Part shown: positions 9,763 through 54,732 of the stretch, piece after piece
Numbering within the stretch: position 1 is the first letter of the stretch
Layout of the letters: each line of letters starts with the position of its first letter
NCBI RefSeq assembly: GCF_052425735.1
Contig: NC_135759.1
Location: 23,870,001-23,934,000 of the forward strand
Length of the DNA: 64,000 nucleotides
Reading direction: 5' to 3'
Source of the DNA: Oculina patagonica
Lineage: Eukaryota
The notes under the pieces: generated by a model
Database searches by the model: none
The model's input: the letters and a program-made list of their open reading frames with translations, nothing else
Told to the model about the DNA's origin: nothing
Translations under genes and position numbers: made by a program

Positions 9763-11695
9763 CTAAAACGTTGTTCGAACAATGGCGCTATAATACGAAC
9801 AACTGATCGTCTCACGGAAATGCTCCTCGAAGTCCTCATTTGTGGCGTTATTTAACTCACAGAATAGTTTGTTTTTATCAGCACAAACATTGAAAGACCT
9901 GCAACGCAGGTCACGTGTGCACAACAGTCCACATTCTGTCACGCCATACACAGTCGTAGTCTTGATCACGTGGTCATGCAGAGAGGCGTAAGCGTGACCC
10001 TGCACCAGAAGGGAACGACCTGTGACATCTAGAAATAAGATAAAAGAAACACCTGATTGAAGAAAAGTCGAACCATGAAAAGCATAAACCATAAATGATG
10101 TTACCCAAATGTTTACTGGGAAATCGCAAAATACTATAAATCATCCTCTGTGACAGAACGAACATTATGATAAGACAGGTTGCAAAAATCATACTCTTAA
10201 AGTTCTCAAAGAAAGAAAATATGTTGATTATAAATAAATGGAATATTCCTAAGCTTACCAATACTGTCGGCAACCAGAATCCCAATTGGCCTTATCGTTC
10301 AGGGTATATACCCTTTATAGGATCAACGTTTGGTATCTCTATTCGGCTGCCCTGGTAGATATGTGTTTTATCCCAAGAAAGCTGTTCACGAACTATGACC
10401 TAGAAATTTTGACGTCAAGGAGCGAGACTACTATGTTTTGCCGGTGCTTAGGTACCTAAAACATTGAGTTACACATTCTGATTAAAGATTGAAACAAACG
10501 AAAAGAAATGATTTATTTTCACAACAAAAAGCATTGGTTTTTCTACATCAAAAAAAAATTCTTTGGTTCATACTTTGTTCGGTTCGTGATACCTTGAGGG
10601 CATATATTCCCAGCTCCACAGCTCTCTGTTCCTGTTTCTTGTAAGTAGTCTGGCGGAAGATTATCTGAAGGACAAAGCTTCTCGCGATGTCTTACCCCGC
10701 GGTCACATGTGACTGAGCATGCGCTCCATGGTCCCCATTTTAGATCTATCTCTACAACACAAAAAATAAATGACAATGCCAGAATGAATCTAGAAACCAG
10801 TCACTTGGCGAGTTTAAAAGGGGGAGTGTGTAGCTCTTATCATAAAAAGCGCAGTGCGTAAACCTCTGGATGTGAAATTAAAAGTCAAGGCACTCGAATT
10901 TATTTTGAAATGAAAGTACTCGAATTCATTTTAACAGAAGTGTGGTGAAAATTTTTTAGCAGTTGCCAGCGAAATCAATACTTAATTAATATATCGTCAA
11001 TGTTTAGAGTTTAACTGTACAATTACGTTAGACGCCTCCTTTCAAACTTGACCTTGCACGCGAAAATTTATGAAACAATATTCTGCATTGAATCAAAAAG
11101 AAAAATCAATTTAATAATCACCGACGTTGTTGTCCGCAAGAAATAGCAGATATTCAGTGAGCAAAAGGTGTTCAGCAGATGTAATTAGAGATTTCTATGC
11201 TACCTTCCATAATTGTTCTTTTTTTATGTTAGTCAAATAATTATTTTGTTCGTGCATTAATTCTTCTGCTATAATTTATTTTAAAAAAATTCCGTAAACC
11301 ATTCGCAAGGCTTGAAAAAGCGAATTGATACGACATGCCTTATAAATTCTCCACTTGACAATTGTAGCTTGCTGATTTTTTTGACGAGATGCATGTAAGT
11401 CGGTTTCCAATTTAACAACAACAACTGCGAATAAACGATCCATCGAACAAGTTTGGTCTGGGGCAAAATCTCCCTAAAATATAATTCTGGTTTTCAGTCG
11501 AAGAAATGTTGTACATGAACCTACATGTAGATTGCAAAAAAAAAAAAAATCAAAATAATCGAAGTACATATAAAGATCGTAGAGAGATTCAATAAACGCA
11601 TTACCATGGCACGGGGGATCACTGGCTTGCACACTCGTGATGAAGATGTGAATGGCTCCCACATAAAGGACAAGCATTGTTACTAGTGCCAACAT
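9763..11695 (-). CDS. Small secreted TSP1(TSR)-PAN/Apple protein, ~171 aa (TSR-PAN gene A)
   Basis: Exons 11695-11605 (signal peptide MLALVTMLVLYVGAIHIFITSVQA), 10751-10593 (WGPWSACSVTCDRGVRHR, TSR) and 10028-9763 (SLHDHVIKT..ECGLLCTRDLRCRSFN..CELNNA..YYS, PAN). Phase-1 introns; total 516 nt. Confidence 0.88.
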
Positions 11696-12047
11696 TTAGC
11701 AAATGTAAGCGTAGGTTTATCTCAGATCAGAGATCAACTTCAAGTTCTCCTTCACACTAAGATCTAAGGAAATCAGTGCTTTTTTTTGACCTGTCAGTCT
11801 GCTATTGTCTTATCTCGACGGTTAATTAATTGCTTCCTAACGTCTAACTGAGTGAATGGTCTCCGGAGATAGGTTCCCAAAACAAGAGTAGGAAAAAAGT
11901 CCGCTAATGAATAGAATATGCTAATTTGCTGATTTAAAATCAAATTCAAAATCAATAAGAATAAATGACTTATATAGCAATTATAATTAGGGATCTGTTG
12001 TACATCTAGTTTAAAGGCTTTATAAAGTAAAGAAATGATCCTCACAG

Positions 12048-12200
12048 TGAAATTGCAATTAACGAAACTGCAAAGAAAGAAGCCTAAAAAATATTTAGGG
12101 TTTCAACGAATTTTAAACTCGTGACCTCCGCGATACCGGTGCGATGCTCTACTATCTGAGCTATATATATGAAGCCATACATTGGGAGCAAGGTCAATTC
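12048..12200 (-). mobile_element. tRNA-derived SINE-like fragment
   Basis: Minus strand reads TAGCTCAGATAGTAGAGCATCGCACCGGTATCGCGGAGGTCACGAGTTTAAAA: an A-box-like motif and a degenerate B-box, with no closable acceptor stem. Confidence 0.6.
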
Positions 12201-12267
12201 AGCTGTCAATTGAGAGTTCTTATTTCTTAGTAGGCTTTGTGATAAGCAAAAGCCTACCCAGAATAAG

Positions 12268-12382
12268 ATAGCCTGTTCCAGGCGTTCGGTTAGTTGTCTC
12301 GCCATTTTTTCCACTCGTCGTTTTTCGTGCAAATCCGTCCCGTTTTCCGCGCTGTACCCCAACTAACTGAACGCCTAGAAAG
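12268..12382. mobile_element. Short palindromic MITE-like element
   Basis: TTCCAGGCGTTCGGTTAGTTG ... CAACTAACTGAACGCCTAGAA imperfect inverted repeats. Confidence 0.55.
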
Positions 12383-17198: not shown

Positions 17199-20100
17199 AT
17201 GAGATCACTGTGGACGCTACAAATATTTTGCTTCGTTTTCGTTCCTTGCTATGAAGGCAAACAGAAAGAAGGTAAGACCTAAATATTTACATGTAGCTGT
17301 AAAGTCTGAATTTACAGTTAACTGTCTCAACTATTTCAGTCTGCGGCGGCGACGGCGGAGACAGCTTGCAAATTAGTCATATTTCAACCGCGCAAAGCGC
17401 GCAAAGCGCGCAAAGCTAACCGCGCCATTTATAATAGTGCTTTAAAATGTACCTAGTGTGCTAAAGAGCGATGTCGGTACGTATATGCACAAATCGACGA
17501 TGTTTTACGAATAGCATTTACAGTATAAGAAAATAAGCCCGGCTAAAAGAGGAGTAACAACACTGATAAACACTGTCTCGGGAGGGCACCGGCAACCCAA
17601 GCTCCGTAAGCTGGAAACTGCGTAACACTGATATTAATAGTCCCTCGAAATTTCGTAGTGTTCGCAAAATTAGGCTGGTGCTCAGAATGCTCGCAAAATT
17701 TTGGTGTATGCTCGTTTTTTCGTGCTCGCATATTTTTACAAGTGCTCGCATCATGCTCGCATGCTCGGTGTTTTGTGGAGGCAGCTTTTTGAAAAGTGCT
17801 CGTTGCTCGCAAGGCTAACATTTGTCAATGCTCGTGCTCGCAAAGAAAAACGCTGTGCTCCCATGCTCGCGGTAACCGGTTGTTTCGCCTACGAGTTGTT
17901 TCGCTAACGAAACAACCGCAATTCATGCTCGCTATGACCATTCGATAAACCAAGAATAGATGGAAATTGTGCTAAATAAAAAGATTGCATCACCATTACC
18001 AATGTAAAATGTTCTTGATAAACAGGTAAATGGGCTTGAAGGCACGTACTGCGAGTAGCCAGTAAGAAATACTCAAAAGATTAATGGGGCCATTTTCGTG
18101 TTTGGACAAGCCACGCACTAAATAGCCTCAAGTACAAACAAAAGAAACATATCAATGACATTTGCGTGCAGCGTTGGTTGTATCATGCTCAGTGGCAGAA
18201 ATTCACTAAAATATAGAAAGTGTTTTTGTTTTTCTTACATGTTTTGCGGCTAAAATTATAAAGTTTCTGCAGATAGCTGCCTGCGTCGCTTATACGGGCA
18301 GTACAAACTGAATAAAAAAATTTATAATTAAAACACTTTAAACATGACTCACGCCAGTCTTCTCAGTACGTGTATTAAACATGTTTGAGTCTATACCTAC
18401 CTCGAAATTGATGAGTAAACAACATTTTTTCCAGCAGGTATCCTATGTTACAGCTTGTTACTATCTTTGGTTTACTTTGCTGTAATTCAGAACTCTATTT
18501 TTAAGAAAATAATTTTAGTCGGTTTTTCCTGAGACGTTCATTTTTCGGTTCACCGAATTCGAGGACCGTGAAATTTTCTAAGTATTGCATAAATTGCACT
18601 AAAGAAAAGTCTGTTAATTTTTTTTTTTTTTTTGCATTGCATGGTTATCTTTAAAAGAACGTGGTGTTAAATAAAGATAAAAATCTTTCCATGCATGCAA
18701 TAAGTCACCCTAGACGTCTGCTTAAATTATTAAAATTATAGGGCAAATCAGCCGCTACATAAGAAGCAGGCTTGCACACAACAGTCATTAATCGTGCCGA
18801 GTACAGTAGGCATATTAAACGTTCAAACTCAAAATCGAAGATCGCACGGATTTCTGTTATTTTACCTTGACTCTGTAAAAATTAACTTGGTAAATATTTA
18901 GTGACTTCACAGTATTTTTCTTTTATGATACTGATAACAATATTTGTTTAGAGAATTGTGACTATTCTATTGGAGGAAATTAAATCCTACTCCAATAGTT
19001 TAAGGTAACATAGTGACGAAATGCATGACTGATACCATCAGCGACACCGTCGTATATAATTGACGACTCTCTTTCATTTTTGTCGTATGCGTTTATAAAG
19101 AGCCAAGTTCGATATTGAGTCTCAGTTTTTACTTTTTCTGTCGGAGTGATTAGCGATGCATCTGACAACGGGCCAAGGGCTCGCTCACAAACACAGCACG
19201 TTCCTTTTTGTTTGTGCTCTCGCTTTAACGATGCCTTTCGAAGTAAAATGCCAAGGTAGGGATTTTCTTTTGTACTTTAGAGGATGAATGATTTTCATTC
19301 TTTTTACTCCGTATAAATAATTTAGCGGAAAACCCTTTTGTGGTGATCTTGACTTCAATGAAATCTTCTCAAAGGATTTTCCCTAACACCTTCTGTTTCA
19401 TGTCATTTGATTTGAAAAGAACAAAACCATTTTGCTAATGGTCTTTGAATAATATTCAGCTTAAGATATTTATCAACCCTCTTAATCTGAAACTGTTCAT
19501 ATTAGTTTAAGACTGTTTGCTATATGTCGCAACCAAGTTCCTGTCTTACTGAAAGAAAATGACACCAAGTAAGAGGCAATTGATTGCGCGTACGCCGCCA
19601 CACCGCTGTATTTTGATCGAAAGACCCTGAAGTTGCTGTCTAATATAATCATTTACATTAATTAAAGGAAGAAACGTCAAGTTTTGATCAAACGAAAACT
19701 TCCGCTTTCGTTTTCCGCTATTAAATTCTTTATCAAAGCCATCGGATGTCGCGCGCTCTCACTGAATTTGAACCTGCTAAAGTTTTTGTTTCTGCGATGA
19801 GCTAGCGTTCCATCCAGGGGAGAGTAGAAATACTTCAAGGCTTGAACGCAGATATAACCTTAACATAGGTTTTGTTTCCAAGTTTTCGCTCTTTTAATAA
19901 TAGACAGATGTTGTGCCCTGCCCTATCAAACCATCTCACCAAAGATGGTCTCACCCATGAGAGTAAAATATAACTCTAGTGAAACTCTAATTCATCAACC
20001 GGGTCTCATCAACTCTCGTTCTCATGATTACGTCTGGTTTTCCCTTTCAAAATAAATGTATTGTCGAACAAGTAGGTGATGAGACTGATAAAGAAAATAT

Positions 20101-23100
20101 CAACAACTGCGTGCAAATGTCTTCGGATATGCCACCAGAAGTAACATTAAAAATAATACCTGGCAATCGATGAGGTGAATAACTAATTCGAAATTGGGGA
20201 GTTAAGAAGAAAAAAAAATAATATTCAAAGTTCAGCACTCAACGATCAGGCGCGTACCTTCCTTTACGCGATTTACGCAAGTGCGTATCAGAATTTCCCA
20301 GACTTTTTTTACATTATAGAAGAAAAGCAAACGGTAAAGTCCTGTAATAAATAATATGGAAAATTTTGGTTTTCTAGTTGAGAATTAAGCTAACCTCCAG
20401 GGTTTAATCTTGACTTCACAAACTCTTTTCAGTCTCAGGAATGCAGGAAATGGCGTTTTAGAGGGTAACATAAAACAAAATTTCCAGGGGGACATGCCCC
20501 CGGACCCCCAAAGAAGCTCGCGCCTACGGCGCTCGCTGACTCGTCCCCAGTCGTCTTTTTTGAGTCCATCTTGAGTCGACTGCTGGACACGGAGGGAATA
20601 ATGGGAAGGAAGTCTCTCGCCTTTCCTCCTTCCCATCATTTTTGCGTCTTGTACTTTTCGCATAAGAGACGACTGGGGACGAGTCAGCGGCGCTGGTATC
20701 ACACCTTTGGCTTAATCTCCCACTGACTTTGTGCGTACAGCTAAACATTGCCTAGGAACGCCCCTGACGATTGTAAACTCCACTAGATGCATATGGACGG
20801 ATCGGAAAGTGGATATATACTGAGTTGTGCAACGCTTTCAAGTGGTTTACTATGGAATATCTTACGAGTCACTTGTATTTTCTCGGTATACACACGAGCC
20901 TTTAGGCGTTTGTGTATACAAAGAAAAAACAAGTGACAAGTGGGATAATCCATAGTGTACCACGAGAAAGTGTTGTGTATCTATTTTATACCATGCCATA
21001 GAAAATACGAATAAAATTCCGTCGAGAATAAAATCGCAGCGCATGATGGGAAGGTTGAGTTGAATACCGTCGAATATTCAACGGCTTTCCAGTATTCTGA
21101 TTGGCTGTATTTTCTATGGCATGGTATAAAATAGCATACCGTATTTTCTCGATTAAACGCCGGGCCCCGAATAAACGCCGGGTCTCCGAGCTATAGTTGT
21201 AAGTAAGCCTTCCAGGCATATATTTGAGGTGTAATATGCTTTAGGTATGATGGCAAATTACGTTCCTGTCACAAATAATGATTTAAAACCCTTGTTTAAT
21301 AAACATTTTACTCCAATAAACTGCACCATTCAAATGAACGCCGGATCCACGGAGCCAAGGGGCCGGGGGCGTTTAATGATTGAGAAAGTACGGTATGCAA
21401 TTTATCCATTTTATCAGTTTAAATTTTTTTTTGAAGTATGGAACCAGAAAAGTTAGAACATGTGTGCATGTCTTGATGATCGATGAAAGATTTTACGGCA
21501 GATTTTAAGGTGGCTGGTAAGGGTTTCCAGCACTTTCCATCACTTATACGTTGTTGGGTCAGCCCTACGTACTACTATTGATTAGTTGATGGGTCAGTAA
21601 CCCACTCTGATGCAACAATATGGGTATCAAACGAATGCCTATTTTCTTGACATTTTTGGTTTACATAGCAAAAGTATGATCTATTTTTTCGGTCCATTTG
21701 TATCTTTACATACTTATCACAATTCGATAGTAAAACGTAGGGTCACCAAACTTAAAAGCACTTCAAGGTAAATTAAGCGTGCTTTTTTTAGAGGTTATAC
21801 TGTTGCTTTGGTTACCTTTACCTTATTAACATAACCATAACTTTTTCATCAATGATTGGGCCTTCTTTACCATTATTTTAGAGTTAACTGATAGAGAATG
21901 GAAGTACTGACCCATCAAAGTATAGACTACGTTTTGTTACCATGCATTTTTTCGCATTTTGCTTTCTTGTTTCCTTCCTTAAAACTCTTCAATAAAGTTT
22001 TCTAATAAGTGTTACCCAGCTTTACTCCCAATTAAATTCAAGAAGAAACCGTCTTTTACGGCAACGTGCATTAGGTAGATTCTTAGCCACACAGAATAGG
22101 CATATAAATATCTAACTGCACGAGAAATTTCTAGGAAGGGATTTGCGACATCTTATATGTTGAGGCGTTATGCGTCGCCTGTTCGGGGCTTATTAAAAAA
22201 GAAAGATCAGTTTTTACGTTACTTTTCTGCTATAAAATTTCAATATTTTTTTATTTCAAGTAGTGAAAAATCTCACTCGCTTTTCTGAAAGCACCTTCAA
22301 GTTCGTATTTCGTTGTTCAACTGAAACACCGACTAATTCAATCAGTTTTCAGTCTAATAATATGATATAATTTTCAACGCCTAAATTTTCATCATTCATA
22401 CAATTACTACGTCCCGTTTTGGGCATGCGCAATATGTCTTATTTTGGTATTTGAAATTGGCATGCGTGTGTGCAAAGGATTAAGGGATTATAGAGGCTAA
22501 ATCAGTTATACTCGTAGTAATATACGTAGCTTATTCTTGGATTGCAATTTAAAAATATGGTATGGTGCTTTCGTATACTGTTTGGGAGATAATCGAAACA
22601 TAAATGTTAAGAATATTATTGTTATTTTGTGAAGTATCTCGGAGAAATAGATATAGAATAGTTAAATTAAAAGAAGCGCACTGATGGTTCTTTATGGAAA
22701 AATTTAGCTCAAATTAATAATTAAATTTACTGCTTTGAGAAAATTGGTAGTGATGCAATTGTTCTTCGAAGGTAGAAAAGTGGATAAAAAAATAAAAAAA
22801 AATAAGGCGTTCCTAAGAAGAAATTTATAATGCTTGCCTTTTTAAAGTTTAATTTTACCAAGCCATTCCGCGCAGAGTCCTCTAATTACCTTTTTGAATC
22901 TTACGGTGTTCTATCCAATTTCAATATTTAATGTTGTGAAAATTGCTGCTTCGACAGCTTAAACTGAACAATTTCACAAAGTAAAATTGAACGAATTAGT
23001 AGCAGTTCGACTGAGAATCATGAACGCATAACGGTTGCGTGCGATATCGAAGAAAACTATCGAGTCTTTCGTTTTATTTCCGTAAATAATTCATCCACGT

Positions 23101-26100
23101 TCAATTTTACTCAATGTGTTTTTTACCAGCCCTCCACTAATGCACATCGACATGCTTTTTTTCTTCAAAGAAAATGAAAAATTGGCTTTCAGCTCAAATT
23201 AGTCTCCGAAGCATTGATTGGCGGGATAAAGCCATCTACGTACAGTTTGCTAATTATGATTAACTTTACCGTCAAGGGGATTACCGCCATTACAATAAAA
23301 CGCTTGGCCAATAGACGTCCGTGTCTGTCAAAGCACCGTTTGTAAATGTTTGCTTGGCAGTTTCTGTACTTTAGAAGCCAATACAAGGCAACAATCAGAG
23401 CGGAGATCGCTTACAATTATGACAAAAATTCATTTATAGTCCGAAGAAGTTATGGAAGTAGGATCTATGCGGAGCGCAAAGGTCCATCGACTGGTGCCGA
23501 ACTTGCTTTTACTGTGGCTATGCAGCATTTCAGTGGTAAAAGGTATTCATGATGAGTTTGCTTACTTTTCTTACTAGGACGTAATAACTGCGAGATCTGA
23601 TGTTTTTACTTTTATATCGTATTCTTTTGACGTCGCCGACAACTGAAAAGCGCGCGATGACGGCTGAACGAAAATTTTTTTTTCTTTTGCGAAGATGAAT
23701 TTCATAAACTAAATATCGAAATATTTCGTTGAGGTTTCAGTGAAGAATGTAACCCTAAAATCTTGATTTGGTCGGTTGAAGGCATTCGTAAAGCAAAATT
23801 ATTGATATCTCCTGAAATTTATGGGCAATATATATAAAGAGTATAAAGAGAATCAATAAATGATGTTGAAGTTTCTTTCAAATCCTGAGTCCATAACTGA
23901 TTACAATGCTGAGGTCTATCAGTTTTATGGGCCAAAAGGACGGAAACACGATTGAAAACTTAGAAAATGCATGCGTAAACTTATTAACTGATACTGACTG
24001 GATAACGTTTCACGTGTAATCGTGTAATAAGCCCATGGATTTATTTTTAATGAAACCTAAACTGCGCAGTTCATTTACAAAACAGAGCTCTCAGCTAAAA
24101 GTATACCTAGCTCAAATGTATGAAAAAAAACTGTTGTTTTTAAAACACCCAATGTGTTTCCATGCACAAACAGTCTCTTATTCAAAAGCTGTATAATTCA
24201 CGCCGCCGCTTACTTTAGTCTCAGCGGCAACATTAAAGCTATCCAGTTAAAAAGGAAGACACATTTTTACTGCAAAAACTACTGGTGAATGATTTATTAA
24301 TATGGTACAAAAGCGAGTTTTTTAACAAAAAAAATAAGGCTCGCCTATTTTAATTTTTGTACTTTTTAAGTCACAAGACTCAAATGGATAGATGGGCTTT
24401 GTACTTTGTAGATGAAATCAATCTTCTTTTATCATTTAAATTGATCTTTTTGTCTCAATATATGGCATTGAAAGAAGGATAATAAACCATACAAATGTAA
24501 AATGGAATTATTGTGTTGAACATAAAAATGTTTTTCTGATTGTTGGGTTGCCGCTAAGTTGAAACATTCAGTACAGACTGTCGTGGAATATTATAACAGA
24601 GAAGTTAGAAACTTCATATCGAATTTTATGAGTTATTATTTATCATGCAAATATGCCAAAAACATTTAAACACAAAGTGCATGCAAATATAACTTTATTG
24701 TCCGTTGTTGTCATTTTCTCGATACGGAAAAAGAGGTTCTCATGCCACTTTCCGCGGTTCACATGCGAATTCAAACAATTGTATCGGGTGTCTTTGAGAT
24801 CAGATTTAGCAATAAAATCGTCCAAATATTTAATAATGCATCTATTTTCTCGCTCGCTTGAAAGAGAGGAACTGGAGTAAAAATCAATCCTGCATGTACG
24901 TTTTATTCTCAGGCAACAGTTTTAAAATTAATACATCCGGATGTTACACAAAAGACACGGACTCGACAATTAGTTTGACACTTTTCTATTCCCGTCATGT
25001 TTCAAAACATCAAATGTCCGGCCATCAAAATGGAGAGATTGACAATGAGTTCAAGCTAACACGTAACATAGCTAATACTTTTAATCTCTAAAAGATATTC
25101 GAAATCAAAAAATAATTTTGTGAGAGCTTGAACAAATGAAACTCAGATTTCGCATAAATGCTTTTAAATCGGCATCGATTTACTTGATTATTTTTAGCTT
25201 AGTTGTCTTAAGATCACGATTTGTTGACCTAAGCCATAAAAGCCACTTTTAAGAGACCTTTTAAGTCACACGAATTATGTCAGCCGAGAAATCAAAACAA
25301 TCTGATTACCGCTGTCAACCGTTGCGCTGGTGTATTTGTCATATTATTTGGCCTAGTTTTTGTTACTATTTGTCAAGCTAGCATTAGCACTTGAAGGCAT
25401 TTTTTTTAATGTACATCAGTATTGTTTGTAAATGTGTGCTAAGCGAAGTAAATTCGTACTCGGGGAACTGGTAGGGAAATGTATCTCCACTAGACAAAAA
25501 AAATTACTTGCGAGTACCTTATTGTTACTTATTTTCGCGGAACCTTAATTTCGCGAAAATGGAATGGGCATGTTTCGCGTGACTTAAATTTCGCGACTTG
25601 GCCAAAAAAATACGTTTTACAGGAACTAAATTTCGCGAAAATTGTCAAAAGACTGGTCTGCATTAACAAACAGTAAGTCTCACAATTGGTACAACTGATT
25701 TTAATTTTCCTCAGTGCTAGTAATAGTTTCCAATGGCACTGAACAAACCCATATAACAAAACGAAGCTTAAAGCATTTTTACATGTTTCCTTTGTAGCAA
25801 AGTAGAGCTAGTTTGACGACTGTACCAAGATAATTATGTAGTAAATTGACCGCAACGTTGATAAATTATAACGTATTATATAGAAGGGTATTAAACTTCG
25901 CGTCGTTATTTTTTGCAATAACATTTTTTCGCGGGTCTTTAATTTCGCGATTTTATGAAAATCGCAAAATTCGCTTGTGAAAGTCCCGCGAAAATAAGTA
26001 GCAATAAGGTATGACCTCACAGGGATTTCGCTTATTTGCGGCAAGTACTTCAATTTACGTACCAACATATTTTTATCGTAAGCACTTAAAGTTTTTCAAG

Positions 26101-29100
26101 ATAAAGCTTTCACATAAACAGACACCATTAGTAAATAAATAACTAGATAGAGTGATAAAGTGAATATATTAAGCACACGCAAACTAAATGGGAACTGCTT
26201 TTATTATCTTATTCTTAAATGTTTCTTAAATGTTTTTAGGAGAGTGGGGAGAGTGGGGAGCTTGTGCTGTCAAGCTTTAATCACCTTATTCTTTAATGTT
26301 TTTAGGAGAGTGGGGAGAGTGGGGAGCTTGTGCTGTCAAGCTTTAATCACCTTATTCTTTAATTTTTTTAGGAGAGTGGGGAGAGTGGGGAGCTTGTGCT
26401 GTCACGTGTGGAACTGGACAGAGAACACGTGAAGGATGTAAAAAGGAAGTTAAACCGGGAAAGACATGTCCACCAGGACAGGTGACAACACAGACCGAAG
26501 TGTGCAGCACAGCTTCTTGTGGTGTATCCTCTTTGGTAGCACAAGGTGACTTAATATGTGCCAGTGGATAGCTTAAAATAGGAAAATGTTACACTGAACA
26601 AATACGTCCATTTTCATGTCTATTTGGATGTATCAAAACACAGTACGTCTCAGACTTATTTTCGAACACATCATCACGAATTAAAGAATCTTAAATTTAG
26701 TAGTTTGTTTGCAATACCAGAAAATGCATAAAATTTATTGCATTGTTAGTAGAAAAAAATAGTAGATTGCCAGTACAGGATGATACTTCCTAACGTCACT
26801 GCTTAGTAGGTGGCTATGTGTACATAGCCACCTAATATCGACCGATTGATCGCTCAATAGAAAGCTCTTGGAGTGGTTTTTCGTGTACAATGGCCCAAAA
26901 GGATTAACAAAACTGTCATTCAAAAATTCATTAATAATTCATAAAGAAAATACAAAAGAAATTAATTTTTAATGATTAATTTTTAAACTTTACCTCCAAT
27001 TTTCTAGGCAAAAATAGCCCAAAAACTAAATATTAGTGCAAGAATGAGTTGATCTACATTAGAAGATTTTGAAGCTGTTCAATAAAATCTCAGTTCGTGT
27101 TTTATCAAGTCTAAAACACTCGGCTGCGCCTCGAATTTTTAACTTGATAAAACACTGCTGCTCATTTATGACACATTTCGTAAATCACTGTTCCAAAACA
27201 GTTAGACTGGTAAGTAAAGAGACTCCTTTACACCAACTTTAAAAACATTTACACACGGTAGCGTAAAGGTCGGTTTAACCACCTTTAACAACATTTAATT
27301 GATGGTGTAAAGTTGGATAACCGACTTTACACCAGATTTAACCACATCTTTAATTTCATGTAAATCCCAATTTTCATGCTGTGATATTTTGAGCAATTTT
27401 AAGTGACATCAACTTTTCAGTATTTTTATATGAATCACTGTTTACCTTCCTCCACGACCAGCTGATGATTGCTTCACAAAGCCTGTAGGAGTATCTGACC
27501 AAGCCAAAATTCCTGATAATCACATAACAGCTTCTTCTCAATATGGCGATAATTACAAGCCCGCTTACGGTCGACTCAACGGAGACAGAGGCGATGGTTG
27601 GTGCGCCAAAAAAAAAGATAAAGATGACTGGCTACAGGTTGATCTTGGCACAACTTTTCAAGTGTGTGCTGTTGCTACCCAGGGAGACATAGATGGCGAT
27701 GAATGGGCCACGCACTTCAAGTTGTCTTACTCCTCGGATGGAAACGTCTGGACACCTTATAAGGATGCAAATGGTGTAGAAGTGGTGAGAGGTTACACCG
27801 CTTAACTTCAATACTAGTTAATTGTTATTGCATGTCACGAGATTCATTTAATTCAAATAGAAAATCAGAGCGATGCAATGATCATATGTTTAAAATCGAT
27901 GACACAATAGTTATAAGCAACACTTTATATTGTATATATACTAGTTATGCAACGCTTTCGAGTGGTATACTATGGAATATCCCACGAGTCACTTGTATTT
28001 TCTCGGTATACACACGAGCCTTTAGGCGAAAAAGAAAATACAAGTGACAGGTGGAATATTCCATAGTATACCACGAGAAAGTGTTGTATAACTATTTTAT
28101 ACCATGCCATAGAAAATACGCTTACTTAATTTCGTCGAGAATACAATCGCAGCGCACGATGGGAAGGTTGGGTTGAACACCGTCGAATATACAACGGCGT
28201 TCCTGTATTCTAATTGGTTGTATTTTCTATGGCATGGTATAAATCCATTTATGCTTCGTATAATTACGTTGTTTGTTTGTTTTTAATGAAAGGAATTCCA
28301 CAGGCAAGGTGACAGCAACACAGTTGACCAACACAGATTGTCAGTGCCAGTGTCTGCAAGATACTTTCGTTTTTATCCAACCAAGCAACATAAATGGAAC
28401 TGTCTTAGAGTTGAGTTGTATGAAGGTAAGCGTGAGTTCTCAGTTCTTTTATCAATTAGACATCTGAAAACAAAGCAACGTATTTCTGTGTTATCTATAG
28501 GGTCTATTCTAATCAGGTAATAATTACACCATAACACTGCCAGAAGTTATTACACCACATAATAATATAATATATTTCCGTTTGAACTCAATTTTCTATT
28601 TCTGCTTTACAGAAATATCAACAGGTAAAACAACAACTGTACAAAACAAGTTAAGAGCAAGAAAAACCTGTTAACTGTAAGATTCTTTAACCGTTAAGGC
28701 GCAGATCGAAAAATCTTTAACATGTACAGTAGATGATGAGTTGGACTTAAACGGTGGGTGCTTTCTATCCTTTCTTAACCCTTGGTGTAATCACTGAAGG
28801 TAAGAAAAGGAAGGTAATGCACCCCACGCACTGAAGGAGATAAAATTAAAACCCCTGTAAAAAGTTCGCACCATCCATTCATGGCACCGGGGCGAAACAG
28901 CCAAAAATTGGCCGTTAGGCGTAAAAATGAAAAAAAATTAACCGTTAACCGTAAATGCAACAACTTCATTGAGACCCTCAAAACATCAAGCTACAATAAA
29001 ATTTGGCCAAGTTTAGGAATTAACCTCCTTTTCAATAACGGGACCCAGAAAAGTTATAACACGTATCATCTTTACTTTATCATCATCCACAGCGCAATAT

Positions 29101-30390
29101 TCATCATCTGTGGCTCTGACGTCATCCTCTCAGAAAAAGACGTCATTTGTGCCAATTACATCACCGCTTGCCAAGCCTTCGATCTCTGCGCTAACGTCAT
29201 CTTCAGAAGCGATGACGTCGGATTCTTCGTCTGTTTTCCCTATGTCATCCACTTCTCCATCGTCCACAGCGCAACTCTCTTCTTCTCTGACTCTGGCGTC
29301 ATCCTCTCAGAAAAAGACGTCATTTGTGCCAATTACATCACCGCTTGCCAAGCCTTCGATTTCTGCGCTAATGTCATCTTCAGAAACGATGACGTCAGAT
29401 TTTTCGTCTGAGATTCTTATGTCATCCACTTCACCATCGCCCACAGCGCAACCCTCTTCATTTCTTGCTCTGACGTCATCATCTCAGAAAAAGACGTCAT
29501 CTGTGTCAATTACATCATCGCTTGCCAAGCTTTCGACGTCAGATTCTTCGTCTGTGATCCTTATGTTATCCACTTCACCATCGTCCACAGCGCAACCCTC
29601 TTCATTACTGGCTATGACGTCATCCTCTCAGGGAAAGACGTCATCTGTGGCTTTAACTCCGCCGCTTGCCAAGTCTTCGCCCTCTCAGTCAATGTCATCG
29701 GCAGTAATGATGGCGTCGGGTTCTTCGTCAGTGATTCTTATGTCACCTGCCAAGTCTATTCACTGGGGATCAATAGCTTCCTTCGCATCCCTCAATAGTG
29801 GGAATAATAAAGGTAGCCATGACAATTATGCCCTGAATATTTCACACCCGTCTGACCTGCTTTTCTTAAATGTTGCTGTTATAAAATCCACCTAGCAGCA
29901 TGTATTAAACCTATCAACATTTGTTGTTTATACTTTTAAAAAAATCCTGGAATCTTCTAGATGATGTTAAATTTGTGATTAATAAATCCATTTAAATGAC
30001 AACTGCTATAAATTGCAGAGTTTCTTTTAAAGTTAATATCTTCTTGTTGAATATCATATTTTAAACATCTATTTTTTGTGGTCTTTTGTTCTCCTAGATG
30101 ACCCATCCAGTCGCCAGGCGTATTTCCACACTGCGGAGGAAAATTGGATTCTTCTTAATCACGTGATAAAAGATATCTGGACCCCAAGCGAAATCACGTG
30201 TGCGATGTTTTGTTTAAGAGATCAAAACTGTCAATCAATCAACTTCAAGTTTACAGCAAAGGACTCTATCCAGGTTAAAAACACCAACACAAAACAGTAC
30301 CCGAACTGTCAGCTCAACTCTGCCAAACACTTGGCCAATCCAATGGACTTCTTCCCAAGGAAAGGTTACCGCTATTATTACTTTACATGA
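17199..30390 (+). CDS. Secreted modular protein: signal peptide - TSR - F5/8 type C (discoidin) - Ser/Thr mucin-like stalk - PAN/Apple, ~575 aa (TSR-PAN gene B)
   Basis: Exons 17199-17271 (MRSLWTLQIFCFVFVPCYEG), 26372-26545 (GEWGEWGACAVTCGTGQRTR), 27462-27784 and 28293-28425 (IPDNHITASS..GRLNG..GWCA..DWLQVDLG..VATQG..ARYFRFYP..CLRVELY), 28613-28624 (microexon), 29093-29812 (S/T repeats), 30098-30390 (PAN). Total 1728 nt, in frame. Linking the leader exon across the 9.1 kb first intron is inferred from its phase. Confidence 0.82.
17640..17935. repeat. TGCTCG(C)-rich internal repeat, probably a non-autonomous transposon fragment
   Basis: More than 10 dispersed TGCTCG(CA) motifs in ~300 bp. Confidence 0.55.
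20247..20766. mobile_element. Non-autonomous TIR element with a nested palindromic insertion (20536-20687)
   Basis: Outer ends CAGGCGCGTACCT / AGGAACGCCCCTG flanked by an ACGAT direct repeat. Inner CTGACTCGTCCCCAGTCGTC...GACGACTGGGGACGAGTCAG flanked by CGGCGCTCG / CGGCGCTGG. Confidence 0.65.
20814..21130. mobile_element. Double-palindrome interspersed repeat, copy 1
   Basis: Two adjacent hairpin units (e.g. ATACCATGCCATAGAAAATAC...GTATTTTCTATGGCATGGTAT). A closely similar copy lies at 27936-28243. Confidence 0.75.
21139..21393. mobile_element. MITE, TA target duplication (Tc1/mariner superfamily)
   Basis: TA|CCGTATTTTCTCGATTAAACGCC ... GGCGTTTAATGATTGAGAAAGTACGG|TA. Confidence 0.8.
25517..26009. 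mobile_element. MITE, TA target duplication
   Basis: TA|CCTTATTGTTACTTATTTTCGCGG ... CCGCGAAAATAAGTAGCAATAAGG|TA, with internal AATTTCGCG repeats. Confidence 0.85.
26207..26404 (+). repeat. 66-bp tandem repeat x3 spanning an intron/exon junction
   Basis: Unit = 33 nt of intron end (…TTTTTAG) + the first 33 nt of the TSR exon. Acceptor-following bases at 26240, 26306, 26372. Confidence 0.95.
27936..28243. mobile_element. Double-palindrome interspersed repeat, copy 2 (in the intron splitting the F5/8C domain)
   Basis: Aligns by eye with 20814-21130. Confidence 0.75.
29081..29750 (+). repeat. Coding tandem repeat, 177-bp (59-aa) unit, ~4 copies
   Basis: Units start at 29093, 29270, 29447 and 29591 (third unit is 144 bp); they encode LTSSSQKKTS..ITSPLAKPS. 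Confidence 0.9.
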
Positions 30391-30600
30391 CAAAGAAGGA
30401 GATACCACTGTTATTACCTCGCATGCGGACAACGAAGGGGATACCACTGTTATTACCTCGCATGACAACGAAGGGGATACCGCTATTATTGCCTTCCGTG
30501 GCAACGAAGAAGATAGCGCTATTATTGCCTTACATGACAAGGAAATGATATTACTTTTATATTACTTTACACAACAAGGACATGATACCGCTTTACCTTT
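30362..30600 (+). repeat. ~36-bp tandem repeat starting in the last codons of gene B and running into the 3' UTR
   Basis: GATACCACTGTTATTACCTCGCATGACAACGAAGGG-like unit, ~6 decaying copies. Confidence 0.85.
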
Positions 30601-32104
30601 TATGGCCATGAAGAAATGCCGCTTTTACCCCATAACGTTATTAGCACATAATGGGATTGGATACTGTTAGTAGTTACTGACATAACGACGAACTTTCAAC
30701 AAATTATTCCTCCAGATAAGGTGTAACATCACACATGTAACGCGACAGCGCCAGATCCAGGTCGAAGCCATAGCTGGGGTAACGTCTACAAATTGAGGCC
30801 TATGAACATTTTTTACGTCTGAAAATGGAGATTAATGCACGAAACAAAAATATTAATGCTAAAGAATTATGGTTAAAGTCGCCTAAATTTGGCCAGATAA
30901 CATGATGGTTTTCTTTTGCCGAAAATCAAGATTCATGTGAAGATGATAGTGTGTGCCTGCTAAATATATTGGTTAAGCGCTAAATAATTTTTCTTCAAGG
31001 GGGAAGCCGGCTTGTATCGACCTGAACGCAAAAAAGAGAGAGCGAGCATCACAATGGAGCATAGACATTCCTTTTTACCTTTTTTCCCCAGCTTGTATTC
31101 TCACGAACAGACTTCTTTTTGTTTAGCATCCGCAAATTTGATGTAAATAATTTGCCGAAAATTTAGTTCCATAGGGTTATGCTGCATACCATAGAAGCTC
31201 TTTTAACCCCCTGCACCCCCGTGCTTGTTTTCCTTTTTGGGGCCTTTTTAGGGGGGGGGGGGAGCGAACCATAAATCAGTTTGGATACATAGAAAAGAAA
31301 TAAAGTTGACTTTGTAATGTTTTAGTCCTGTTTAGTGAGGGAGGCTTAATAGTGCTTTTACAGTAACTGAGCTACCGCAGTAGCCCATTGCTATTGAGGG
31401 AATTAACGTAAGAAAATTACTGTTTAGTGTTGTTACACGTTTATGCTATTTGCGAGCTTCAGCTGAAAACACAGACCAGGTGCAGAAGGATTTTCAATCA
31501 GTGATCGGTTCCTATAACTCTACTTTTCCCAGGAATTGGAACTCAAAAAATACAAAAGATTAAAGACTTTGTTTCTTTCGATGTTTTCATAGATGAACAG
31601 AAATTATGACACAAGACGAACGTAAAAAACACATTTTATAATATGTGAAATCTAAATTGGCAGGTTTTAATGAACGCGAATAAAACCCACTTAAATGAGT
31701 CAAATAAGCATGTAAGCTTTTTGACTGTATAAAACTCTTAAATTAAGCTGATTTCCATTGTCTTCCGAATTTTCTGAGTTAGCCTGTGATCATTTCGCCT
31801 TTCTGTTTCATAACGCCGAGAAACAAGAATGCTAGAGTGAAAAAAGACATGAAACGTGAGCTCACAGTAAAGTAAAGTAAGGCAATTCAAGATTATTTAT
31901 ATTTCATTGGTTAAGGAGAAAGATCAAATTTGAAAGCTTCCTTTGTTATCTGATACAAAATCAAAGATATGTAGTACCCGGAGGTGAAAAATTGCTTGGG
32001 GAAAATAAATAAACACCATAAGAGTTTCACCGTACGCGTGGGAAGGAAGAAAAAATATTTTACGCGTTAATTTGTTAAGGCGTATATGTGTGATATAGTT
32101 TAAA

Positions 32105-33976
32105 ATGCGTCTTGGGAAGGTGTTCTTTGTATTGCTAATCTTTTTATGCAGACTTCTGAGCAATGTAGAAAACGGTAAGTTATACTTCTTTTTTTAAAAA
32201 AATGGTATTTTAAGTTCTTTCCACATTATATCTAAATTTAATTGCAATTTCTCTCGTAAAATTGTTGGCTTTGGCAAACGAGGCTTGTCAGAAGTCCATA
32301 TTTTCCATGTGATATCTTAGTAGAGCAGATAAAGATATGGAACAAATTTAAAACGAAAGAACATGGAAAACGAGTTGACAAGCATCGAAATATAGCCATT
32401 TAGATCTCTTATAAGTGAGTTATAACCTACAGAATTCAGTATTTTATAGATTCTCAAACAACGTTATCATTGCAGAAATACATTGTTAACATTCTATAAT
32501 CGCACAGTGTCACTTTATTTCATCTTTCTCTCTTCTGTCCCTTTACATTTCTTGCCTGACTGATATTTCTTTTAAGGATTGTCCTGTTTTTTTTTTTGTT
32601 TCATTCTTCTTATACACCCTTTGACTCGAAGGTGTTCGGTCAAGTTAAAGGTTAAAAAAACAAGCTGAGGCGTCACAGTATTTTAAGCTATTGCAAACGG
32701 GCAGTGCAGTTTCAGTTTAGGTTCAAGTTCAGTTCACGTTTCAGTTCACTGAAACGTGATCACCAAAATCACCTGCAGTGTTCAGTTGCAGATAGCTCGG
32801 AAATGTCACTCGGAAACGAGCTCTTCACTGTTTATATTTGCGTCATTGGTCGATGGTTAATTCTGTTAACACATCAACAAAGCAAGAAAATCTCAAATAT
32901 AATTAATGACTTTTAATTTTGAACAAAAAAATGCATATGATTTCCTTGTTTCTGCGCTAAAACAACAGTTTGTTGTTTTCTACATGGGACCTCTTCGCTT
33001 GTTTGTCCAGCTACGAAAGCGCGCGCGCGCAAAAAAAAAAACAGTGTAGTATAGGGTATCAAAAGCCTTGGCTAATGAAAAGCTTATCACAGTAACATGT
33101 AGATCTTTATTTTTCTTCTTAGTGACGTGATTAAAAATGATGCGGTCTTTTTTAGCAGCAAATTTGAAGTGTGTTCAGTTCTATTCGCCTAAAAAAATCA
33201 AATCACACAAGCAAAGTTTCAAGAGTTCAAAAGATTGTTTTATTATAGTGAATTCAAAACAAGTAATCAACGTTGAAGGGAAAAACATCGCTTTATTCCT
33301 CCAAGTTCTCTTTTATACATTTTAGCCCTTTCATTGCACTATGTAGACGCAGGGATATTTTACAAGGTGTTAAGATGGACTGAATAGCTTTAAGAAAACC
33401 ATTCTTATTCTCAGAGCGCCCTTGTTCTTATTGGACAGTGATTGCATGCAAGCGCATTTTTCAACCAATCAGAGTGCGCGTTGTATTTGGGTTAATTTAT
33501 TTTCTTGTAACGTAAACTGTTCTGTCGATTCTTTAGCTCATTGGAGTCAGTGGAGCGCATGCTCTTTCTCATGCGGATCTGGTGTTCAGCAGCGACACTT
33601 TAATTGTAAGAAAAAGAAGTGTGATCGCGTACAGACAAGATCGTGTCAAATAACCTCCTGTTCTATACACGACATGACCGGAAATAACCTGGGAGGACTG
33701 CTGCGAAGAGGCAGAAACGACCTGGCGTTAATCAACCACGACATTAAGGAGCTGTTCGTTTCTTCCGAAATAGAATGCGCTCTTTACTGTCTGAGATTAC
33801 CTGAATGCAGCTCTATCAATGTTAAAGTGCAGAAAGACTTAGCGAACCCGGCAAAGGAAAATTTATCACTTCTGTGCCAGCTTAACAATGCTACTGCTGA
33901 TTCTGAACCAGAAAATTTAGTTGGAATCAATGGTTCAACTTATTACAGCTTTATTTCACGGCAATCGAGAACCTAA
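32105..33976 (+). CDS. Small secreted TSR-PAN/Apple protein, ~169 aa (TSR-PAN gene C)
   Basis: Exon 32105-32174 (MRLGKVFFVLLIFLCRLLSNVEN, donor GTAAGT) + exon 33537-33976 (HWSQWSACSFSCGSGVQQR..; ALINHDIKE..ECALYCLRLPECSSIN..CQLNNA..YYS). Total 510 nt. Confidence 0.88.
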
Positions 33977-42560: not shown

Positions 42561-42689
42561 ATTATGATGTGTACTTAGTAGTGTAGTCAATTAATGACAC
42601 ATCTTGTAAAATAGTTTACATTTAATGAAGTTGAAATAAACAATGAGTTGTTATCAACAATTGAGTCTTCTGTCTTATAAAAAAATTAA

Positions 42690-51842: not shown

Positions 51843-51910
51843 GGAGAGGAGAGGAGAGGAGAGGAGAGGAGAGGAGAGGAGAGGAGAGGAGAGGAGAGGA
51901 GAGGAGAGGA
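51843..51910 (+). repeat. (GGAGA)n polypurine microsatellite
   Basis: About 13 perfect pentamers. Confidence 0.95.
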
Positions 51911-52335
51911 TGAGGGGGGGGAGAGGATGAGGGAACTTAGCTCGCTTTGTTTCTATTTGTCGTAACACATTTTCCCCTCGATTTCTTCTGGGACGGGAGA
52001 GCTTTTTAATTGTACATTTCTTTTTACAGTTATATACATTTTATGCCTACCTTTTTAGCTTGTGAATTTCAAATTTAACTTTAATCTTTTTTTCTTATGA
52101 TATTGTAATGCGCAATTGAAAAATTCCTAAATTGATAAATGCACAATAGAAGTTAATTAATCATATTTATTTATTATACTCCTGACATTGAGATGAAAAA
52201 GTGCTGGCGGAAACTAAACAAATACAAGCCGGACATCATATAAAACTGTTCACAAAGAACGGAAACAAGATGATGATTTCTCATTGAACGATGTTTGGCG
52301 TTATGAATACACAGTAAACGTTCATATAGTTTAAG

Positions 52336-54732
52336 ATGAGTTCAAGGAAAGGTTTCTTAATTTCATTTCTCTTTCTATGGAGACTAGCGAGCACTGTTGG
52401 AAACCGAATGATAGGTAAGATGTGCCGATTAAACATTTCGCTATTTTCTCTTTTCTCTTCATATAATACATGGCAACTAAAGCACTTTTAAAGCAAACTT
52501 TGGTTTAGTTAACATATTTTAAATTACTCTAAAGTTCTATTTTTCCGATCATATGCGTTGTTCATATATACAATGCGTTGTTCGTAGATCTAAAAACAAA
52601 ACTAAAAACGTTAACAAAGAACAGTTATCAATAGAAATGATTATTAACGTAATGGAAGTCTTCACTAAAACCGCTTGTTGGTGTTATGTTCACTCCATGA
52701 TCAGTAATTTCCTTTTAGTGTGTTGTCTTCCGCACGTATACACTTTCGTAATTATTCAGGTCATTTCTTCAAAAATTTCTGTATCTCTCTTATGATCTTT
52801 AAGTTAAGTGTTTTTTCATTCTCTTCTATAAATAATGCTGGCGGTCAAGCTAATGGTGTCCTAACAGAGGGCTTGATTTTACCAATTTCACAGACTCTAC
52901 TGTGCAGGTCAAAATTTGGCTATAAAAAGTCCATTTTTTCTTTATTTTTTGCTCATTATAATACATGCCAGGCAAATTCACCTGCCGTTTTTAATAGCGG
53001 ATAACGAGCGTATACATTTCCTCGACGGAAACGGAACACTCAAAAGATGTCTGTCTCTCTGTCAATAGTGAGATTACATGTACTTTCTGGGCGAAAACGA
53101 AAAACTTATTAAATTTTTCAATTAATTTTTAATTTTGAACCATAAACGATTTTCACCATTTGTGTGTCCTGACCTATGCCTTAGCAATCAAGCTTTCACC
53201 GACCTTGCATGAGTGCATGTTACAGTAAGACTATAAGAACTGAGTAATTTGTTGGTCTGTTCTCGTTAAATCAATTCAATTTCATTCGTCATGGGGCCTA
53301 TGGTTATTAATTCATTGCATCAACACAGAAAAATTAAACCACTACGTTGTGGCTAAGTGAACTCGGCAGTACGATTTTTATCTCAGTCTTTTTGTTATAT
53401 AGTGGTTTGTTACTATGGACTGACACTCGTGATGAATACGCCAAGACATTTTAAAAGAGAGCTTCTTCAAAGAGTCAATCCCGACGTCAAAAACCGGTCA
53501 AGCTTAAATCCCTTATCGTCAAGAAATCAAACTGAGAAAAAAAATTGTGTATTTTTTTGTCTGGATTCGACTATTCGAGACCATAAGATACCCAGAGTGC
53601 TAGAGAGTTTCTTTCTTCCTCTTATTTTGCAAAAAGTGCGTTTTCGTTTATTACGTGATTGTCGATATACAGCCAAAAGTAACTTGATTGTGAGCCCCTT
53701 TTAACTGGCTCAGAAAAACTCGTGAATTATTTTCAGAGACCGATCAAATGGAAAAGAATATTTTTATCAACAAAAGCAAAGCCAAACCCAATCGTTGGCT
53801 TTCCCGCCATGATTTTCCCGCCATTGGCACCTGTAGCAAGTCATTTGTTTTGAGTCTCGATTAGTTCATTCTTTACTTTATTTTATTATTCCACTATTGC
53901 GCCATTTTACCATATTAGGGCAAAAGAAGGCGCAAAATATATACCACGTTGTTACACTGTAGAACAAGGCAAAAATACGGGCGAACAAACTTACAGAACA
54001 CGGACCCAAACTTAGTGGGAAAAATAGTGGAATAATAAATATCTTTTCGATGGTTTAACATATAATACGAGCGGACATTTTGTCATTGCTCGTAATTTTC
54101 TTCGACCCTACGGGGCTCGGAAAAATACTACGCAACTCGCAATATTCGCGCGTATTCTATGTAAAACCATCGAAAAAGGTGTATTTATTCGGCTAGATGT
54201 CATTTTGGTCTTATTTCAGTGATAAAATATTATTTATTTTGTAACACACGGCAATTTATCCTGCCTATCGCTAGGAGAGTGGACGCAATGGAGCGCATGC
54301 TCCTCATCAGATGGATCAGGAACTGGGTTTCAGCAGAGGGTGTTTCAATGTAAGTCCACAGCAGAGGTGTGTCAGCAAGTGCAGTCCCCGGAGACAAGAT
54401 CATGTGTTATGGCTATTCACGACGACATGGCTGATAGCTTCAAAGATCGCTACCTCGAAGGCCTGTTCCAAGGAAGCAAGACCGACGTAGCTTTAAGAGA
54501 CCACAATATCAAAGAGCTGTTGGTTTCTTCCGAAACAGAATGCGCTCTTCATTGCATGAGAATACCTGAATGCAGCTCTATCAATATTGGAGTGCAGGAC
54601 TCAGCACATGCACTATTTGCATTACTTGTGTGCCAGCTTAACAAGTCCACTGCTGATTCTGTACCAGAGGATTTAGTTGGTTCCATTGGTTTCAACTATT
54701 ACAGCGTATTATCCAGGCATTTCGGAGATTGA
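52336..54732 (+). CDS. Small secreted TSR-PAN/Apple protein, ~178 aa (TSR-PAN gene D, paralog of C)
   Basis: Exon 52336-52414 (MSSRKGFLISFLFLWRLASTVG, donor GTAAGA) + exon 54275-54732 (EWTQWSACSSSDGSG..QQR; ALRDHNIKELLVSSETECALHCMRIPECSSIN..CQLNK..YYS). Total 537 nt. ATG context is similar to gene C. Confidence 0.88.
54034..54189. mobile_element. Palindromic MITE-like element in the gene D intron
   Basis: AATAAATATCTTTTCGATGGTTTAACAT … ATGTAAAACCATCGAAAAAGGTGTATTTATT. Confidence 0.7.

Follow-up and report, generated by a model that had tools for sequence, protein, structure and literature searches.

Four neighbouring genes, which we call A to D, lie within a 64,000-nucleotide stretch of the genome of the stony coral (scleractinian) Oculina patagonica (RefSeq assembly GCF_052425735.1, chromosome-scale contig NC_135759.1, positions 23,870,001 to 23,934,000 of the forward strand; hereafter the window, with positions counted from its first letter). 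They very probably belong to a real and conserved family of secreted proteins in which a signal peptide (SP) is followed by one thrombospondin type-1 repeat (TSR) and a C-terminal PAN domain, with gene B carrying a discoidin module and a Ser/Thr-rich stalk between the same two ends. The origin of this discoidin module, for which the comparisons presented below point to a recent capture from a tandem array elsewhere in the genome, is a new result.

Gene models, domains and predicted fold

The gene models were spliced from the sequence after six-frame scanning for TSR signatures and PAN-like exons. All four close in frame, every intron is GT..AG and of phase 1, and the coordinates proposed in an earlier reading of this DNA from its letters alone (the sequence-only reading) proved right to the base. 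Gene A (9763-11695, minus strand) has its leader exon at 11695-11605, its TSR exon at 10751-10593 and its PAN exon at 10028-9763. Genes C (32105-33976, plus strand) and D (52336-54732, plus strand) each follow a leader exon (32105-32174 and 52336-52414, respectively) with one exon that encodes both TSR and PAN (33537-33976 and 54275-54732), having lost the TSR/PAN intron that A and B keep. Gene B (17199-30390, plus strand) is built from six exons: a leader at 17199-17271 (MRSLWTLQIFCFVFVPCYEGKQKE, with a phase 1 donor), a TSR exon 9.1 kb away at 26372-26545 (alternative donor at 26521), the two exons of a discoidin (F5/8 type C) module at 27462-27784 and 28293-28425, a Ser/Thr-rich, mucin-like exon of 240 aa at 29093-29812, and a terminal exon at 30098-31320 that codes for PAN up to 30390 and continues as a 3' untranslated region (UTR) of about 930 nt. 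The predicted proteins are 171 aa (A), 571 aa (B), 169 aa (C) and 178 aa (D), and models and Pfam matches agree with the earlier description of three minimal TSR+PAN genes of ~170 aa beside a B that contains a discoidin domain and a Ser/Thr-rich stalk. A tblastn search with the four models found no fifth copy in the window, matching just these exons, and no other close paralog of A-D was found in the whole 529-Mb assembly.

Pfam searches for the domains that the sequence-only reading had suggested checking matched TSP_1 and PAN_1 in A-D and F5_F8_type_C in B. The gathering thresholds are 21.6 bits for TSP_1 (PF00090), 21.4 bits for PAN_1 (PF00024) and 28.2 bits for F5_F8_type_C (PF00754). TSP_1 scores above its cut-off in A (42.6 bits), B (28.6 bits) and C (27.4 bits) and under it in D (17.0 bits). 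For PAN_1 the match of A (24.3 bits) is over the cut-off, and those of B (20.8 bits), C (20.4 bits) and D (20.7 bits) are 0.6-1.0 bit short, with alignments that cover nearly the full profile (positions ~9-73 of 76). The discoidin match of B is divided between exon 3 (79.8 bits, profile 2-82) and exon 4 (26.7 bits, profile 89-127). Exon 5 has no Pfam domain; 45% of its residues are Ser or Thr and only 7% are Pro, and its repeats have periods of 177 and 144 nt according to Tandem Repeats Finder (TRF).

The WxxW motif is present in the TSR of all four genes and the CxxS/TCxxG motif in that of A, B and C. The TSR of D is atypical, lacking both Cys2 (the sequence reads CSSSDGSG) and Cys6, the final Cys. 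In the established structure of TSRs these two cysteines form one disulfide of the TSP-1 pattern. The same pair is also missing from two D orthologs, P0004 and the copy in a second coral (55 kb of ENA ERZ25067872, contig ctg20987, reached through relatives found in a word-index search). D has lost one whole disulfide and retained the domain in this altered form.

The leaders of A-D have a hydrophobic core of 10-18 residues, preceded by a basic n-region in all but A, from which we infer that the four proteins are secreted through leader signal peptides. Beyond the leaders no hydrophobic stretch of 19 residues was found (Kyte-Doolittle maximum 1.25) and the C-termini are polar, in line with the earlier observation that none of the four has a transmembrane segment.

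The TSR+PAN exon of C alone was modelled with AlphaFold2 from a 24-sequence alignment. The model has a mean predicted local distance difference test (pLDDT) score of 80, with the PAN part mostly at 86-96, and places a helix (residues 77-86) against a 5-stranded sheet; the four cysteines of the PAN core (C80, C84, C90 and C113) are invariant in the 24 aligned sequences. In a Foldseek search of the PDB, residues ~45-140 matched the Apple domains of factor XI/prekallikrein, the MANEC domain of HAI-1 and the N domain of HGF, as well as the Sarcocystis lectin SML-2 and Toxoplasma MIC4. Residues 1-45 matched TSR3 of BAI1, the TSR of TRAP and a POFUT2-TSR complex, with a TM score by target of 0.72-0.77 and 36-39% identity between residues 1-41 and TSR3 of BAI1. 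These matches have E-values of 6e-3 or weaker, with a probability of 1.00. The same families were recovered from the Swiss-Prot AlphaFold set, and plasminogen, CCN3 and isthmin-2 are among the structural matches.

Transcription of gene B and the source of its discoidin module

RNA was mapped to the region 27720-33710 (5991 bases), which takes in exons 3-6 of B and the leader junction of C, in the form of Logan contigs from four runs of four studies (labelled X1 to X4). The introns are near-empty and the exons and 3' UTR of B are covered, an RNA-like pattern, and the four runs are probably RNA. Contigs of all four runs cross the GT..AG junction between exons 3 and 4 (27783/4>28292/3); the junction between exons 4 and 5 (28423/5>29091/3) is crossed in X1 and X4, where the shorter side measures up to 66 nt, and that between exons 5 and 6 (29810/2>30096/8) in X2 and X4. 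At all three the exons are joined exactly as in the spliced model of B. The very deep signal at the first junction comes in part from paralogous discoidin genes, in contigs that are ~10% different and continue into other sequence. The second junction connects the discoidin exon with the mucin exon of B itself, one contig being free of mismatches on the mucin piece, and because of this the composite discoidin-mucin architecture, and with it the 3' half of B, is transcribed and spliced.

Coverage of the PAN exon and UTR extends over 30096-31315 in contigs of the four runs and then stops, at the place of the sole AATAAA in the UTR (31299). A 36-nt tandem repeat (4.9 copies) at 30367-30544 runs from the stop codon of B into the 3' UTR, and the RNA contigs vary there by 3-nt and 39-nt deletions, so that the repeat is of variable length. 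For gene C no spliced contig was seen in the four runs, of which X2 alone had low-depth contigs that include the intron, and contigs of this kind cannot prove an absence of expression.

Sequences from two other corals also back the spliced models. The junction between exons 2 and 3 of A is spliced in contig L025/P0166 (JGI 3300008033) of another coral, which appears to be transcript-derived because spliced exons of the transporter gene that converges on A are present on it as well. On this contig the spliced 3' exons of the transporter are on one strand and spliced A is on the other (corresponding to 7069-7995 and 9791-10742 of the window), which means that the 3' ends of the two genes overlap or abut. 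In the RefSeq model LOC110048641 of Orbicella faveolata, a Ser/Thr-rich segment joins the PAN exon at the 'NK|D(D/E)PSS' point of B. Public models overlook this architecture or cut it short: that of Orbicella begins within the mucin exon, and a protein listed at NCBI for C has no leader.

At the 5' side of B, the acceptor of the TSR exon stands in the third copy of a 66-bp unit triplicated at 26223-26404 (TRF, 2.8 copies, 98% identity). The unit comprises a polypyrimidine tract, an AG acceptor and ~38 nt from the start of the TSR exon, and in the two upstream copies, whose acceptors are at ~26239 and ~26306, a TAA follows soon after the acceptor. The second coral has one copy of the unit and a single orthologous TSR exon of equal length.

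Orthologs of B without discoidin exons were found in three other corals (the second coral, L027 and L028). That of the second coral has the TSR, mucin and PAN exons, and in L027 the TSR and PAN exons are just 1.2 kb apart. Within the Oculina genome, by comparison, window positions 27389-28890 match tandem units on another chromosome-scale contig, C3 (2.44-2.47 Mb), with 72-88% identity in blastn pieces. Throughout C3:2443000-2470000 (L016-L020) two-exon discoidin units recur every ~1.5 kb, all of them in phase 1-1. Identity to these units is 85-88% over exon 3 and its flanks and 89-92% within the exons, where one in-frame codon differs. Introns are part of the matched segment of roughly 1.2 kb, which extends 73 nt into the upstream intron and ~465 nt into the downstream one and includes the internal intron. 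The units have the same internal splice sites and phase 1-1 frame as B, whose upstream acceptor is shifted by 6 nt, in phase. A transcript of B that skipped exons 3-4 would remain in frame. The internal intron measures 508 nt in B versus 205 nt in the donor, and the difference is an insert of ~300 bp at 27939-28236 that resembles a miniature inverted-repeat transposable element, matches itself in inverted orientation and has dozens of 93-94% identical copies over all large contigs.

Compared with three of the C3 units, the discoidin exons of B give a synonymous divergence (dS) of 0.21-0.25 and a ratio of nonsynonymous to synonymous divergence (dN/dS) of about 0.3. Because this donor dS of ~0.2 is at or below the dS of 0.24-0.47 that separates the two corals, and because the module is absent from three other species, these comparisons point to a recent, DNA-level capture of one unit of the C3 array into the TSR-mucin intron of B, after the lineages split. 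The residues at which B and the donor units differ are concentrated in two short stretches (AKKKDKDD versus AKESARDD, and QGDIDGDEWATH versus QGDRNGNEWVTD), which may be ligand-binding loops. B offers a clean and datable case of exon shuffling, with an identifiable donor, retained intron flanks, a phase 1-1 module, spliced RNA and three species in which the module is missing, and would be useful for the study of how new extracellular binding proteins arise.

Three further observations concern the same sequences. TSR exons are located in or near the C3 array (C3:2422739 and C3:2455848), and the donor gene may therefore itself combine TSR and discoidin domains. The summed depth of RNA contigs is very high on the 27939-28236 element, where it reaches about 49,000. 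A repeat-encoded peptide, ATLSSG[IL]LWNI.RVTCIFSVYTRAFRR, occurs in two introns of B, at 20787-20933 and 27917-28063, which are two copies of one interspersed element.

Conservation in other corals

The cluster is flanked on the right by the Mitofilin/IMMT gene (232 bits) and on the left by an exon of an MFS-type (SLC17-like) transporter, the latter a weak match. From ~14.7 kb to IMMT, the window and the second coral align colinearly with nucleotide identities of 64-92% (about 64-83% when the IMMT exons are left aside), and A is also found upstream there, in unchanged orientation. The order between transporter and IMMT, which the sequence-only reading had put forward for comparison with other corals, is thus kept in the second coral, and the identity of Mitofilin is confirmed. 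Orthologous matches comprise all exons of A and D, exons 1, 2, 5 and 6 of B and exon 2 of C. With the exception of the C acceptor the projected splice sites are kept, and the differences in exon length are all multiples of three (91/88, 159/153, 293/287 and 458/443). The leaders of B and D have the same length, an open frame and a conserved donor in the second coral (for B a GTAAGA donor, at 83% identity), and the leader of A is open from the second Met. The mucin repeat region of B is shorter.

Estimated by the Nei-Gojobori method between window genes and second coral orthologs (dS as above), dN/dS is 0.45 for A, 0.61 for the N-terminal part of B, 0.15 for the PAN domain of B, 0.34 for exon 2 of C and 0.29 for D, and the proteins A-D are 73-89% identical between the two corals. 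A-D are coding genes under purifying though fairly relaxed selection, and there is no sign of diversifying selection at the resolution of a two-coral dN/dS. The sequence-only reading had described a tandemly diversifying family; the tandem cluster holds, whereas ortholog dN/dS values of 0.15-0.61 do not bear out the diversification. A-D are old paralogs kept one-to-one between species and not an array in fast expansion.

Gene C has a different fate in the second coral. Its exon 2 is open (about 74% amino-acid identity), and its leader, intron and acceptor are replaced by unrelated sequence; a search for the leader exon there found none, the region upstream of exon 2 being unrelated. The first Trp of the WxxW motif is lost as well (composite ~27763; L001 ~9900-9990). 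The arrangement looks like a recent 5' truncation. In L027, whose coral is more distant, another B-like TSR exon (20024-20203) is found ~10 kb downstream of the B ortholog, in the place of C. The membership of the cluster may differ between species.

Known relatives, rival explanations and possible function

Word-index searches with the TSR+PAN exon of C, the PAN exon of B and a spliced A ortholog returned 5-10 matches per query, mostly fragments of open reading frames on genomic contigs, and none of these was a full-length annotated SP-TSR-PAN protein. A profile search of 1.84 billion representatives gave 1254 matches at E <= 1e-3, dominated by multi-TSR proteins, of which about 15 cover both domains; those that span TSR and PAN in one stretch are the coral orthologs together with P0115 and a Haliotis protein. 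Cluster look-ups of the relatives yielded almost no names, and no spliced, leader-containing reading frame was present among the cluster members, all of which are unspliced genomic calls. The nearest named relative of any of the four genes is Orbicella faveolata LOC110048641, and literature searches on this locus, or on TSR with PAN/Apple domains in corals and cnidarians, found nothing relevant. Across the word-index, profile, cluster look-up and literature searches no named protein with the SP-TSR-PAN architecture was found, as the sequence-only reading had supposed, and the minimal form appears to be a new architecture among the known shuffled-domain invertebrate proteins that use TSR and PAN.

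These two larger secreted relatives are P0115 (UniParc UPI00078A36AA, 322 aa), which has Lectin_C, TSP_1 and PAN_1 domains, and the abalone protein XP_071118257.1 (Haliotis; P0048), which has a C-type lectin domain (CTLD), 11 TSRs and a PAN-like C-terminus and was named automatically as 'ADAMTS adt-1-like'. Pfam finds only TSR families in the Haliotis protein, with no PAN_1 call and no protease domain. Like A-D, these proteins have a signal peptide and one or more TSRs directly before a C-terminal PAN, without a membrane anchor; unlike A-D, they begin with the C-type lectin domain, and they are only 24-27% identical to C. The C/D profile aligns with both domains of each in a single stretch, and the PAN of B shares a C-terminal GYRYY motif with P0115. 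The TSR-PAN cassette at the C-terminus thus seems to exist outside corals. A search of the Oculina genome for a CTLD-TSR-PAN gene like P0115 matched mainly isolated TSR exons.

Other TSR and PAN proteins share less with A-D. Cnidarian TSR proteins were catalogued by Neubauer et al. 2017 (eLife 6:e24494; PMC5446238), a study that implicates TSRs in symbiont uptake, as properdin-like TSR-only, ADAMTS-like, astacin-, VWA-, trypsin/ShK- and Ig-TSR proteins. These resemble A-D in being secreted, anthozoan and mostly lineage-specific in their domain combinations, and differ from them in that A-D pair a single TSR with PAN; PAN/Apple domains are never mentioned in the text of PMC5446238, where every match to 'pan' is unrelated. 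SP-TSR-PAN would therefore add an architecture to that catalogue. Membership in the ADAMTS or ADAMTS-like proteins was rejected, as the Reprolysin and spacer/Cys-rich modules are missing and the Pfam matches in A-D are limited to TSP_1-type and PAN_1 domains (with F5_F8_type_C in B), and the class of properdin-like, TSR-only proteins was set aside in the same way, its defining parts being missing. Actinia tenebrosa LOC116305219 (Fibrinogen_C + PAN_1) has the same PAN subtype but a fibrinogen-like partner instead of the TSR.

The sequence-only reading had also likened the cluster to the adhesins of apicomplexans. The modules are indeed of the same types, TSR in TRAP/MIC2 and Apple in MIC4 and SML-2, but each of these adhesins carries one or the other and never both, as A-D do, and no sequence kinship extends beyond the domain families. 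TRAP/MIC2 are moreover anchored in the membrane with a cytoplasmic tail, neither of which A-D have, and a TRAP/MIC-type adhesin was ruled out on the hydropathy after the leader (maximum 1.25 over 19 residues) and the polar C-termini. B can also be compared with cnidarian Polydom (PMC12549020), a secreted matrix protein whose core is pentraxin-PAN/Apple-FA58C, which like B joins PAN/Apple and discoidin domains. Polydom is very large and contains vWFA, EGF, Sushi, HYR, pentraxin and CUB domains, none of which B has, and the discoidin domain of B derives recently from a different, multi-discoidin gene. Membership of B in Polydom was rejected, the defining domains being missing.

How the four genes relate to one another is most simply read as a single TSR-PAN ancestor followed by tandem duplication, a reading that is unproven. 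The duplication that links C and D is clear and includes the leader exon; A is about 30-34% and B about 29-40% identical to C/D. The PAN subtype of these genes (C-x3-C-x5-C ... C-[EQ]-L-N-N-x-T ... YY) recurs often in the genome, where at least 45 further PAN exons match the PAN of C at 31-43% identity, with clusters on C12, C13 and C6, and where more than 130 TSR exons are present. The clusters at C12:25.8-29.8 Mb, C13:21.3-23.4 Mb and on C6 carry CELNNKT... YYGSVQV at a spacing of 8-10 kb, and at least one of these PAN exons is followed by an EGF exon (L014). PAN is probably a module reused in dozens of other secreted genes of this genome. Given such an abundance of phase-1 TSR and PAN exons, A-D could have been shuffled together more than once, without a single TSR-PAN ancestor. 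A maximum likelihood tree of PAN domains fits this alternative in that it strongly supports the A and B orthogroups and moderately supports a C/D group (89/95) but has an unresolved backbone, which leaves A, B and C/D among the other PAN exons, with the PAN of B grouping weakly (84/81) with P0115 and Haliotis P0048; B has, besides, demonstrably gained a module by shuffling. Separate assembly is nevertheless unlikely in our estimation: A-D share domain order, phase-1 layout and adjacency, the duplication that produced C and D extends to the leader exon, and a domain of 80 residues offers little resolution in a tree.

Several points weigh against a coherent family of four working, secreted TSR-PAN proteins. 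The PAN_1 matches of B, C and D and the TSP_1 match of D score just below the Pfam cut-offs, and the signal peptides were called by eye and hydropathy. The leader-to-TSR junctions of A-D and the junction between exons 2 and 3 of B are predicted from the sequence, and with the decoy acceptors of the 66-bp triplication some B transcripts may be unproductive. C, for which there is no spliced contig and an ortholog without leader and acceptor, may be dispensable or silent. Some of these points would fit a partial decay of the cluster, in which C, and possibly D or B, would be relics and only A and part of B would work. The want of spliced C RNA, the truncated C of the second coral, the D TSR that is one disulfide short and under the Pfam cut-off, the decoy acceptors of B that lead to a stop, and a degenerate C/D-like copy with a lost Cys in another coral (P0087/P0205) all lean that way. 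We consider decay quite unlikely, however, since in the window each of the four genes keeps an intact reading frame, dN/dS is 0.34 and 0.29 for exon 2 of C and D with indels only in multiples of three, the cysteines lost from D are a matched pair whose loss is kept across species, and contigs cannot prove that a gene is unexpressed.

If the family is real, as we think very probable, what its members do is a matter of analogy. Typical ligands of TSRs are glycosaminoglycans, CD36-type receptors or microbial surfaces. PAN/Apple domains attach to proteins or carbohydrates, and discoidin domains recognise galactose-type glycans, collagen or phospholipid. Because of these binding habits, the most economical mechanism would be that of soluble, two-ended extracellular adaptors. 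The leaders would direct secretion of A-D, and the TSR would be C-mannosylated at WxxW in all four and O-fucosylated at CxxS/TCxxG in A, B and C. The TSR end, together with the discoidin domain in B, would bind ligands of the glycosaminoglycan, glycan or lipid type, and PAN, at the other end, would attach to a protein or glycan partner. B is an elaborated paralog that gained the Ser/Thr-rich repeat stalk and later the discoidin module, and it would be a long, probably O-glycosylated, mucin-like component of the surface, mucus or glycocalyx with an extra binding head.

A bridging or recognition function of this kind is a tentative suggestion, to which we give somewhat less than an even chance, and the roles as opsonin or in mucus, skeleton or gametes that the sequence-only reading had listed would be pure inference. 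The main rival, an improbable one, is that A-D are matricellular modulators of signalling in development or tissue remodelling and not recognition or opsonin molecules. R-spondin, CCN and isthmin, which are small secreted TSR proteins, and the N domain of HGF are heparan sulfate binders that adjust growth-factor or protease pathways, and the structural matches of the C model to the HGF N domain, MANEC of HAI-1, plasminogen, CCN3 and isthmin-2 are what such a role would predict. One-to-one orthology and purifying selection likewise fit a housekeeping extracellular role better than an arms race. For core signalling parts, on the other hand, the confinement to a few coral lineages seen in all searches is unusual. 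The proteins are only 73-89% identical between two corals at a dS of 0.24-0.47, and the mucin stalk and discoidin domain of B point to surface or glycan binding.

More specific still, and a long shot, is the proposal that A-D form part of a coral-specific soluble recognition system, in which a shared PAN 'handle' would dock interchangeable heads on a common partner in the mucus or glycocalyx and to which B would have added a discoidin head. If true, B would show a recognition system acquiring a new head by exon capture in the recent history of the species. Corals have large and poorly described sets of secreted, domain-shuffled proteins, which are suspected of handling microbes, symbionts and the mucus layer, and A-D offer specific candidates for searches of mucus or skeletal proteomes and of single-cell atlases.

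The window as a whole is AT-rich, with a GC content of 0.32-0.44, and contains a run of N at 3436-3587.

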